A DNA stretch of 45,797 nucleotides, from contig JAWQFM010000022.1 of the NCBI GenBank assembly GCA_033442325.1, positions 1,165,313 through 1,211,109 of the forward strand. Direction: 5' to 3'. The notes below the pieces were generated by a model that was not told the DNA's origin, did no database searches, and saw only the letters and a list, made by a program, of their open reading frames with translations. The position numbers and the translations under genes are program-made. Below, in pieces: positions 36,487 to 39,967 of the stretch (position 1 is the stretch's first letter; each line of letters starts with the position of its first letter). This DNA comes from Salpingoeca rosetta (lineage: Eukaryota > Protista > Choanoflagellata).

Positions 36487-38327
36487 TCAATGACTTGACT
36501 CATCCGCAGTATCACCACCTTGCGTAGCGCCTCCGTTGTTCTCATCATCACCGTCATGATCATCACCATGATCACCATCACCATGATCACCATCACCATG
36601 ATCACCATCACCATGATCACCATCACCGTTGCTTGCCTTCTTCATGACTGTCTTCACCACGGTCCTCAGTCGATCAATGAACACATCCACATCCACCTCG
36701 TCCTGTAATTCCCGCGGTATGGAGTGCGTGCGTGCGTGAGTGAGTGAGCGTGAGTGAGTACAATACTTCTCTCCACTTCCCGCCCCTTGCACTCCACCAT
36801 TCATCCATGCATCACGCCGGCCTTTCCTCCACCCACAGCGGCTCCAACCTCAGTGAGTCCGACCGCCGCCGCCGCCGTCATGTACGGTACCGGGTACTCG
36901 TCCACGTGCGCCCCGTACCCCTGATGGCGATCAACGTCAAGGTCGTTGGTTGGTCACAAAAGCAAAGCAGAGGCGCAGAGCGTGTCACACATGACTGATT
37001 GCGATCAATTGAAGCGTTGTCCTGTCAACAACTCCACCCCTGGCCCAGTTCTCCTCCACCGACTCCACACCGCGGCACGCGCCCACCTTGAACGTGATGC
37101 CGGCCACTTCCTTGGTCGCCGTTGTCGACACAACCCTGAACGCGGACCACGGGTGAACAAGTGCCGTCCGGAAAAGCATTGGCAATGACGGGATGGGGAG
37201 GCGTGGGGTCAGATATGGCACGAATGCAACGGAATCAAACCCAAACAGAGGCCAGAGCACCACTCTCAAGGCCAACAGCTGTTTCTTAGCGACCACCTTG
37301 TGCCAGAGACGCGGCGAGCGAAGAGCATTGAGCCGAAGAAGGTCACGTCCTGCTGCTGCCGCTGCAGTGCACGCGCTATCCCAGACAGTGACATGGCTGC
37401 GGCGCATTGGCAATTGTGAATGAACATGAACATGGCGGTGAACACACGTCAGAAAACACAACCAGCAAATCACAAAGACTCTCACAGCTATAGCAGAGAG
37501 AGAGGCAAAGAAACCCCTATCATCATCATCATCATGGTGATGATCATCATCATTGTCACCACCACCCACCGCATGAGATTGGGTTGTTTGGGACGGCCAG
37601 CACGCGTTCACCAAACTCTGCCGCCGCCGCCGCCAATTTGGAACGCAGGTACACCATCAGCTCCTGGTGGGGTTGGATGATGACCAGGGTAGTAGGGGTG
37701 GTGGTGTCGGGGTGGAAATGTGGAGAGGTAAACGACGCAAGACAACTGCATGTGTGCCGTATGATCTCAGGATGATTACACAGCGTTCGCAGCAGGTGCC
37801 TGTCTGACCTTTCGTCTCTTGACCAGCCGCATGTACCCTTCCTCTCCAAGGTGCAGCAGCGTCACAAACACATCCACGACCGGCGCTGAGCTCGCCCGCC
37901 CTGCACCCGAACAGAAAAAGAAGGGGGGGGGCAGAGATGGGGAGCAGAGAGTGTGTATGTGTGTATGTGTGTATGTGTGTGTATGTGTGTGAATGTGTGT
38001 GTGTTTGTGTGTGTATGCGTGTGTATGTGTGTGTGTATGTGCGTTTGTATGTGTGTATGTGTGTGTGTATGTGTGTGTGTATGTGTATGTGCGTGTGTGT
38101 GTATGTGTGTGTACGTATGTGTGTGTATGTGTATGTGTGTATGTGTGATCGACAGCATCAGGGCACAGACACACACGCACACAGACATGGCCAACAACAT
38201 GTCTTCCATTTCGTCTGTGGGAACGCATCTCTCCAAATGTGTGACCTGGATATGTCTTGCTGATTGCTGTGATGAAGTCCTTTGAAGGGCTGGCAATGAC
38301 ACCGCCGCCAACCGGAACGAGGAGATT
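36487..38327 (-). pseudogene. SEPSECS: O-phosphoseryl-tRNA(Sec) selenium transferase (SepSecS), C-terminal half only
   Basis: Exons 38327-38246, 37900-37809, 37663-37570, 37396-37297, 37135-37087, 36920-36849 and 36702-36487 give NLLVPVGGGVIA...YPGRASSAPVVDVFVTLLHLG...GERVLAVPNNPISCAMSL...FGSMLFARRVSGTRVV...YPVPYMTAAAAVG...VDVFIDRL. No N-terminal exons were found in the window. Identity is strong; the reason for the truncation is unknown. Confidence 0.8.
36561..36626 (-). repeat. 15-nt coding minisatellite encoding (GDGDH)x4 in the SepSecS C-terminal tail
   Basis: The + strand has repeated atcaccatgatcacc units; minus-strand translation is GDGDHGDGDHGDGDHGDGDHGDDH. Confidence 0.85.
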
Positions 38328-38372
38328 CTGCACACATACACATGTGGTTGGCATCAGGGTAAGATGCGACAA

Positions 38373-39967
38373 TGCCAACATACCAGACTACAGGTGTGTG
38401 GGTATGCTTGTGTGCGTGTCTGCGTGTTGCTGCACGTGCTCTGACGGTCGACACACACACACACACACACACACACACACACACACACACACACACACAC
38501 ACACACACACACACACACACACACACACACACACACACACACACACACACAATCTCTCTCTCTCTCTCTCTCGCGCCCTGAATCTGCCTTTGTTCATGTT
38601 TCGTTGGTTTTTGTTTTGGTCCATGTTTGTTACACGGCCAGGGGACCGGCTGGCCTGTGGGCGCGGGCACAGCGCGGCGAGGCGCCCGAGAGCATTGCGC
38701 GTGACCTGCCCAACCTCGCCGACTGCACCCCGACATACACGCATATGGTCCTGGCCCGTCTGGTTGCTGTTGGTGCGGTGGACTTTATCGTGTCGCAGAA
38801 CTGTGATGGTCTGCACTTGCGCAGCGGTGTGCCTGCAAGCAAGCTGGCAGAGATTCACGGCAACTGCTTCATCGAAGTCTGCCCAGCCTGCCACAAGGTG
38901 TGTGTGTGTGCGTGTGTGTGCGTATGTATGTATGTATGTGTGTGTGTGTGTGCGCGCGCGCCAGAGCCTGTGTGCGTGTTGATGCGCGTGTGTGTCTGTG
39001 CTTGTATACGTACCCCTGCGTGCATGTCATGTTGTGATCCTTCGACTCGGCTCTGCTCGCCATCAATGCATCATGTCTTTTACTCACTGCCTCACCACCT
39101 CATCCGTCCCAGGTGTACCGGCGCCGCTTCGACGTGTCTGCACAGAGCCGCGTCCGCCGCCACACAACACGCCGCACATGCACACACTGCACGCAGCAAC
39201 ACCAGCACACAGAGCAACAACAACCACAACCACAACAACAACCGCAGCAGCAACATCAACAACAACCGCCATCACCACGACCGCTGTTGACAGCCGCCCC
39301 GTGTCCGCGGGATGGCGTTCACCTGGAGGACACAATTGTGCACTTTGGAGAGACGACGCGGCACGCGAGCGTGGCCAACTGGGGTGCGGCGATGGCGGCG
39401 GCGGCGGCGGCGACAGTGGTGGTCGTCCTGGGCAGCAGCCTGAAGGTGCTCAAGGCATACCCGTGTCTGTGGAAGCGGGTGAAGCAGCGGAAGTGCGAGC
39501 TGTTCATTGTCAACAGCCAGTGGACGCCGCTTGACCGGTGGGCGGTGCAGAAGACGCACAGCGACGTGGACGCGTTTATGCGCGCACTCGTGGCTGCACA
39601 CGACAGGGCGCCGGCTGCAGGTGATGGAAGCGGCGGTGGCGGTGCGAGCCGTGGCGTAAGCAACGATGAGCATGGTGGAGCACCCAAGTCTGTTGTGAAG
39701 AAAGAGGAGGAGGAGGAGGAGGAGGACGAGGATCAGCGACAACAAGATTACGATCAAGATCACGATCAAGAGGAGGAAGAGCTGAAGAGTGTTGCCCCTG
39801 CTGCTTTGGTCAATGGCTCGTGGCGGCCGCAGACATATGTGCGCGAGGAAGACCCGTTCTGGCAGCAATGTGATGATGATGACGGCGATAATGATGATGA
39901 TGATGACGCACGCGCTCCTGGCGGATGGTTGATGGCTGGCCTGAAGCGAAGTGCACATCGAAAATGA
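38373..39967 (+). pseudogene. SIRT7: Class IV sirtuin SIRT7, 5'-truncated
   Basis: Exon remnant ~38373-38393 (ANIPDYR), then exons 38642-38897 and 39113-39967: GPAGLW...PTYTHM...VSQNCDGLHLRSG...EIHGNCFIEVC...RRFDVS...DTIVHFGE...LGSSLKVLKAYPCLW...IVNSQWTPLD, all SIRT7-type motifs. No start codon and no intact GAGIS motif upstream. Confidence 0.8.

Follow-up and report, generated by a model that had tools for sequence, protein, structure and literature searches.

A junction joining truncated SepSecS and SIRT7-like genes in the Salpingoeca rosetta genome is very probably an assembly artefact

The window analysed here, a stretch of 45,797 nucleotides (45.8 kb), corresponds in reverse orientation to scaffold GL832975.1 of the Salpingoeca rosetta assembly GCA_000188695.1, with identity over 13,394 nt, and a search with its large SIRT7 exon gave PTSG_08005 of S. 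rosetta as a 100% match. Exons in the window are short and introns are rich in (GT)n/(CA)n microsatellites, as is usual for S. rosetta DNA. The introns of the SIRT7-like gene are made of such microsatellite sequence, and an (AC)50 repeat occupies 38451-38551. Runs of N are found only at 21477-21915 and 30061-30160. Adjoining the SIRT7-like gene tail to tail is a long single-exon open reading frame on the minus strand (40510-43371), which encodes 953 aa (927 aa in the public model, without a precomputed Pfam match) and has a protein-kinase-like core (HADVKPENVLL, DFG) flanked by long low-complexity regions rich in Ser, Thr, and Ala.

The SepSecS gene is read from the minus strand. Its most 5′ exon in the window (38246-38327, encoding NLLVPVGGGVIASPSKDFITAISKTYPG) is defined by the sequence, by splicing, and by RNA contigs from two sequencing runs, X17 and X18, which cover 38245-38329. 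This exon starts at 38327 behind a normal acceptor, with cag followed by AAT CTC CTC GTT CCG GTT GGC GGC, and reads NLLVPVGG...TYPG. Joints in the RNA contigs and translation against the public model PTSG_08006 (P0057) define the exons that follow at 37809-37900, 37570-37663, 37297-37396, 37087-37135, and 36849-36920, and the last exon with the stop codon at 36487-36702; the introns are GT..AG throughout. Once spliced, the first exon and the six downstream exons give residues 10-243 of PTSG_08006, a protein of 243 aa that matches Pfam PF05889 with 144 bits (cut-off 21.1) at profile positions 223-388 of 389 only. The model begins with MPTTCVCVQ at 38354, which is translated intron sequence. Toward the C-terminus, a 15-nt tandem repeat at 36542-36627 encodes (GDGDH)n, followed by an acidic stretch, and the Logan contigs break at this repeat. 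At 36691-36702 in the last exon (minus strand), the sequence is ...GLTEDEVDVFIDRL in RNA contigs from two studies and ...GLTEDEVDVDVFIDRL in the window and PTSG_08006; the transcripts are without one unit of the tandem hexamer GTGGAT (= VD), which is either a small indel error of the assembly or a polymorphism.

On the plus strand, the SIRT7-like gene begins with the last 21 nt of an exon, encoding (A)ANIPDYR at 38373-38393, as supported by the sequence, by DNA contigs of runs X3 and X1, and by one-exon homologues on the choanoflagellate contigs L002 (TARA) and L003 (Logan). The letters GCC AAC ATA CCA GAC TAC AG occupy 38374-38393 and encode ANIPDYR; the gt that follows at 38394 is the donor. 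The other SIRT7-like exons lie at 38642-38897 and 39113-39967 (with the stop codon), and their spliced translation equals residues 4-372 of PTSG_08005 (P0001) and matches Pfam SIR2. PTSG_08005 is 372 aa long, scores 59.6 bits against SIR2 (PF02146; cut-off 24) at profile positions 52-178 of 180, and starts with MLV at 38404 (ATGCTTGT followed by gt), which is again translated intron sequence. The named best matches of this sirtuin in protein searches are SIRT7, and the second and third exons of the window encode the catalytic-His motif SQNCDGLHLRSG (QNCDGLH) and the zinc-binding CPAC and CTHC. The GAGIS NAD-binding loop, which lies four residues ahead of IPD(F/Y)R, is absent from the window and present in the DNA contigs of two studies.

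Between the two gene remnants lie 45 nt (38328-38372) that are free of N. An earlier note on this DNA had held that both genes lack their 5′ ends at this one junction, with SepSecS starting at 38327 with NLLVPVGG and the ANIPDYR exon ending at a donor at 38394. Sequence, splicing, and translation agree on this point, the public models are cut identically, and both coordinates were confirmed by direct reading and by splicing. The note's statement that the PLP lysine is the residue just ahead of the first kept SepSecS codon is likewise borne out, as K284 of human SepSecS aligns to exactly that position. On the minus strand, the 45-nt stretch probably represents the 3′ end of a SepSecS intron, which it resembles in having a CTGAT branch-like site, a GT-rich tract, and cag. 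The N-terminal exons of SepSecS and SIRT7 are absent from the 45.8 kb window, according to a motif search and to tblastn with 14 full-length SepSecS and 7 SIRT7 N-termini, and the idea that the 5′ exons are interleaved in the introns of the partner gene or located farther out was rejected on the same grounds. The 45-nt filler also does not seem to resemble the linkers of 454 jumping libraries, and a circularisation junction would put the flanks in the opposite order; an origin from an unrecognised linker of this kind, an idea prompted by the methods of PMC4054682, is therefore unlikely.

The locus was compared with 24 sequencing runs from 10 studies. At least part of the stretch is present in 20 of the 24 runs, and in 17 at least half of its words occur; sixteen runs, mostly DNA, reach 0.94-0.96 of the words of the region, and three RNA-like runs reach about 0.5, which equals the exonic share. 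Contigs were aligned to window positions 36300-38450 from the RNA-like runs X17 and X18 and the DNA runs X1 (2014) and X3 (2025), which belong to four different studies. The aligned material consists of Logan contigs, in which rare variants drop out and from which a filter removes some records.

All SepSecS exons are represented in record 10 of X17 (1437 nt) and records 15 (941 nt) and 13 (416 nt) of X18, with zero mismatches and with the expected introns. The RNA contigs of both runs leave the window at 38329. In the X17 record, positions 848-932 correspond to the exon at 38245-38329, so that 847 nt of mRNA lie upstream whose letters are absent from the window. X17 and X18 agree in all of the first 30 letters beyond the window, which translate on the minus strand to VDAVVQSTDK in frame before NLLVPVGG. 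This completes the PLP lysine motif (S/T)xDK before NxxVPVGG, which is present as QSTDK/NLLVPVGG in the transcript contigs of two studies and is absent from the window DNA. The closest full-length SepSecS homologue (P0058) reads RVDAVVQSTDKNFMVPVGG and matches VDAVVQSTDK/NLLVPVGG of the transcripts. The 847 nt, of which 30 letters were read, have the right length for an N-terminal half of about 280-300 residues. The data therefore support the existence in the organism of a SepSecS mRNA that has the PLP lysine and, as judged from the 30 nt read and the overall length, an upstream part of the right size. In the protein collections, no S. rosetta protein with the N-terminal half of SepSecS was among the best 120 matches.

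The SIRT7 side of the junction is addressed by genomic DNA. Record 23 of X3 (359 nt) and record 8 of X1 (347 nt) match the window exactly over 38373-38450 and differ from it for about 250 nt ahead of 38373; directly before that position they read CGTTTACACCGGCGCGGGCATCAGCACGGC. The final 30 letters ahead of 38373 encode VYTGAGISTA in both runs, in frame with ANIPDYR, giving VYTGAGISTAANIPDYR. Both contigs cross 38373 unbranched, passing from upstream exon sequence into 38373-38450. An intact SIRT7 exon with the GAGIS loop is thus supported in the genomic DNA of the organism. Neither the SepSecS nor the SIRT7 run-on sequence shares a single 14-mer with the window.

Choanoflagellate relatives place the right-hand break within this exon. 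Contigs L002 and L003 carry VVYTGAGISTAANIPDYR within one exon, and these exons encode ...HVVVYTGAGISTAANIPDYR and ...HTVVYTGAGISTAANIPDYR, respectively, ending at the same donor as the SIRT7 exon of the window. In the DNA alignment, homology of the window to L002 and L003 begins only at about 38373. Because the region from GAGIS to IPDYR is a single exon in these relatives and the window is homologous only from about 38373, the break lies inside an exon. This points to a random breakpoint, caused by a lesion or by false joining, and against an arrangement based on splicing. A degenerate SIRT7 exon, HVVGIRVRCDNANIPDYR, as would be expected of a pseudogene, was considered and rejected, since the homology of the relatives starts at about 38373 and the genomic contigs read VYTGAGISTA.

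The relatives also bear on the order of the two genes. The closest full-length SepSecS homologues (P0058 and P0207-P0209) share about 51-55% identity with the S. rosetta part, and their genes are intronless and lie on marine metagenome contigs of 2-4 kb (L005-L009, from TARA and other sources). The divergent upstream neighbour of SepSecS on L005-L009 is an unannotated open reading frame of 144-165 aa rather than a sirtuin. No SIRT7 stands alongside SepSecS on L005-L009, and no SepSecS occurs within 600 nt upstream of SIRT7 on L003. A head-to-head SepSecS-SIRT7 layout thus has no comparative support among these sequences, a result that is compatible with a deletion as well as with a chimeric join.

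At the junction itself, no DNA or RNA contig from X1, X3, X17, or X18 aligned over 38330-38372, and the depth in the bin 38316-38387 is wholly due to contigs whose alignment stops at 38329 or sets in at 38373. The absence of coverage over 38330-38372 is weak evidence when taken alone, because Logan contigs drop variants and records and because the DNA runs X1 and X3 also have no contig over the exon at 38246-38327, which is itself certainly real. The weight of the case rests on the run-on sequences, which recur from one study to the next. The junction is contradicted on both sides and by four studies in all, as the RNA contigs depart from the window at 38329 and the DNA contigs at 38373. The position of the misjoin is supported as 38372/38373 of the window, equal to GL832975.1:48007/48006, at the right edge of the 45-nt stretch. 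The two versions, that of the window and that of the contigs, share the 8-nt sequence GGCATCAG near the breakpoint, possibly by chance, and no obvious common repeat is present at the break. Short contigs of both DNA runs touch the CA/GT-rich positions 37518-37540, 38164-38187, and 38427 for 20-25 nt and then diverge, and there is one odd contig joint from 37540 to 38164, with 10 letters (GCGCATGGAA) between 38184 and 37518. These contigs probably derive from other microsatellite-bearing loci and do not reflect structure here.

Since genomic contigs show an unbroken SIRT7 exon and the SepSecS transcripts continue upstream, the junction at 38372/38373 is best explained as an assembly error. Very probably, the join of SepSecS to SIRT7 is an artefact of the public hybrid assembly of 454 and Sanger data, in which either a segment was lost or two loci were chimerically joined. 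The S. rosetta genome was produced from a Newbler assembly of 454 data that was merged with Sanger data in ARACHNE; gaps were closed manually, and about 4% of transcripts are missing from the assembly (PMC4054682). In the form that we moderately favour, the lost piece would be a few kb long and would hold both 5′ halves along with a shared divergent promoter, so that the assembly would have dropped, without marking the gap by N, the DNA that separates the SepSecS intron from the interior of the SIRT7 exon. Such an unmarked loss is in keeping with this assembly history. That two unlinked loci were falsely joined is credible, though clearly less likely; the large-insert mate pairs of the assembly would presumably miss a deletion of about 3 kb more easily than a chimera. 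The artefact explanation in general is also in keeping with the expectation of the earlier note that a false junction would go unspanned: as far as the contigs show, none lies over 38330-38372, and both SepSecS and SIRT7 continue beyond the break. Of the origins that the note had offered, namely a deletion, an inversion or duplication breakpoint, and a misassembly, the contig run-ons at 38329 and 38373 favour the misassembly and speak against a recent deletion.

A real genomic deletion that took the shared promoter and both 5′ ends, and so inactivated SepSecS and SIRT7, would agree with the truncation being found in both the assembly and the public annotation. However, the SepSecS transcript contigs run past the break in two studies and the SIRT7 exon is unbroken in the genomic contigs of both the 2014 and the 2025 run, which makes such a deletion extremely improbable. 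The loss of selenocysteine synthesis that the earlier note had envisaged, should this be the only SepSecS, is for the same reason unsupported, given that the SepSecS transcripts extend 847 nt beyond 38329 and include the PLP lysine. It could also be supposed that a real rearrangement split both genes, whose absent parts are then contributed by a distant locus, for example through trans-splicing to 38327. In the SepSecS mRNA the joint uses the normal acceptor 38327, which is compatible with splicing in cis or in trans, but the SIRT7 break is located inside an exon that genomic contigs read straight across, and a single misjoin accounts for the SepSecS side without any unusual mechanism. This proposal, which was likewise raised in the earlier note, is therefore unsupported and is considered the most improbable of those weighed here.

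Somewhat less remote, yet still very unlikely, is that the window holds a real truncated second copy, for instance a segmental duplicate that has suffered an internal deletion, or a deletion allele present at low frequency in the sequenced culture, with intact copies located elsewhere or on the other allele. Contigs show presence and not absence, the kept exons and their splice sites are intact, and the 17 runs that hold half or more of the sampled words of the region are silent on the junction, all of which leaves room for such a copy. Against it, the DNA contigs of two runs cross 38373 unbranched with none aligned over 38330-38372, the RNA contigs match the window exons with zero differences and thus give no sign of a diverged paralogue, and no second SepSecS or SIRT7 of S. 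rosetta was found in protein searches. There is an equally small chance that the join at 38372/38373 reflects true structural variation, in which the culture sequenced for the reference had, beside an intact divergent SepSecS-SIRT7 pair, a deletion allele or truncated duplicate of it.

With assembly error as the preferred explanation, the value of the result is that of a correction to the assembly and its annotation only. Because the locus is truncated in the assembly, the models PTSG_08006 (SepSecS) and PTSG_08005 (SIRT7-like) are shortened, and their start codons are an invention of the annotation. As these models belong to the widely used S. rosetta reference, comparative work based on them would wrongly record the absence of a working selenocysteine synthase, or of a SIRT7 capable of catalysis, in this choanoflagellate. 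The draft contains silent, N-free joins, and other cases of apparently broken genes in this genome thus need to be compared with reads.

When set beside known systems, the SepSecS of S. rosetta is similar to human SepSecS (PDB 3HL2, 4ZDL, 7MDL), as the part encoded in the window aligns to residues 284-474 with E = 1e-46 and the S. rosetta transcript contig has STDK/N..VPVGG, in which the lysine corresponds to K284. In contrast to the human protein, the window and PTSG_08006 are without everything that precedes the PLP lysine, which is ascribed to the assembly error, and the S. rosetta protein bears a C-terminal (GDGDH)n acidic tail. The sirtuin shares RGPxGxWT, QNCDGLHLRSG, the CxxC pairs, and LGSSLKVLKxYP with SIRT7 and class IV sirtuins (Trichoplax P0032, Saccoglossus P0037, L002, and L003), and the VYTGAGISTAANIPDYR of the S. 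rosetta DNA contigs is identical to that of the choanoflagellate SIRT7 of L002 and L003. The window and PTSG_08005 differ from these sirtuins in being some 115 residues shorter at the N-terminus and in having no GAGIS loop, and the S. rosetta protein differs in having a Q-rich insert between the zinc-binding cysteines. The junction resembles the silent deletions and false joins of drafts made from 454 Newbler and Sanger ARACHNE assemblies in being an N-free join in a microsatellite-rich region with which independent data disagree, but differs in that no obvious shared repeat marks the break.
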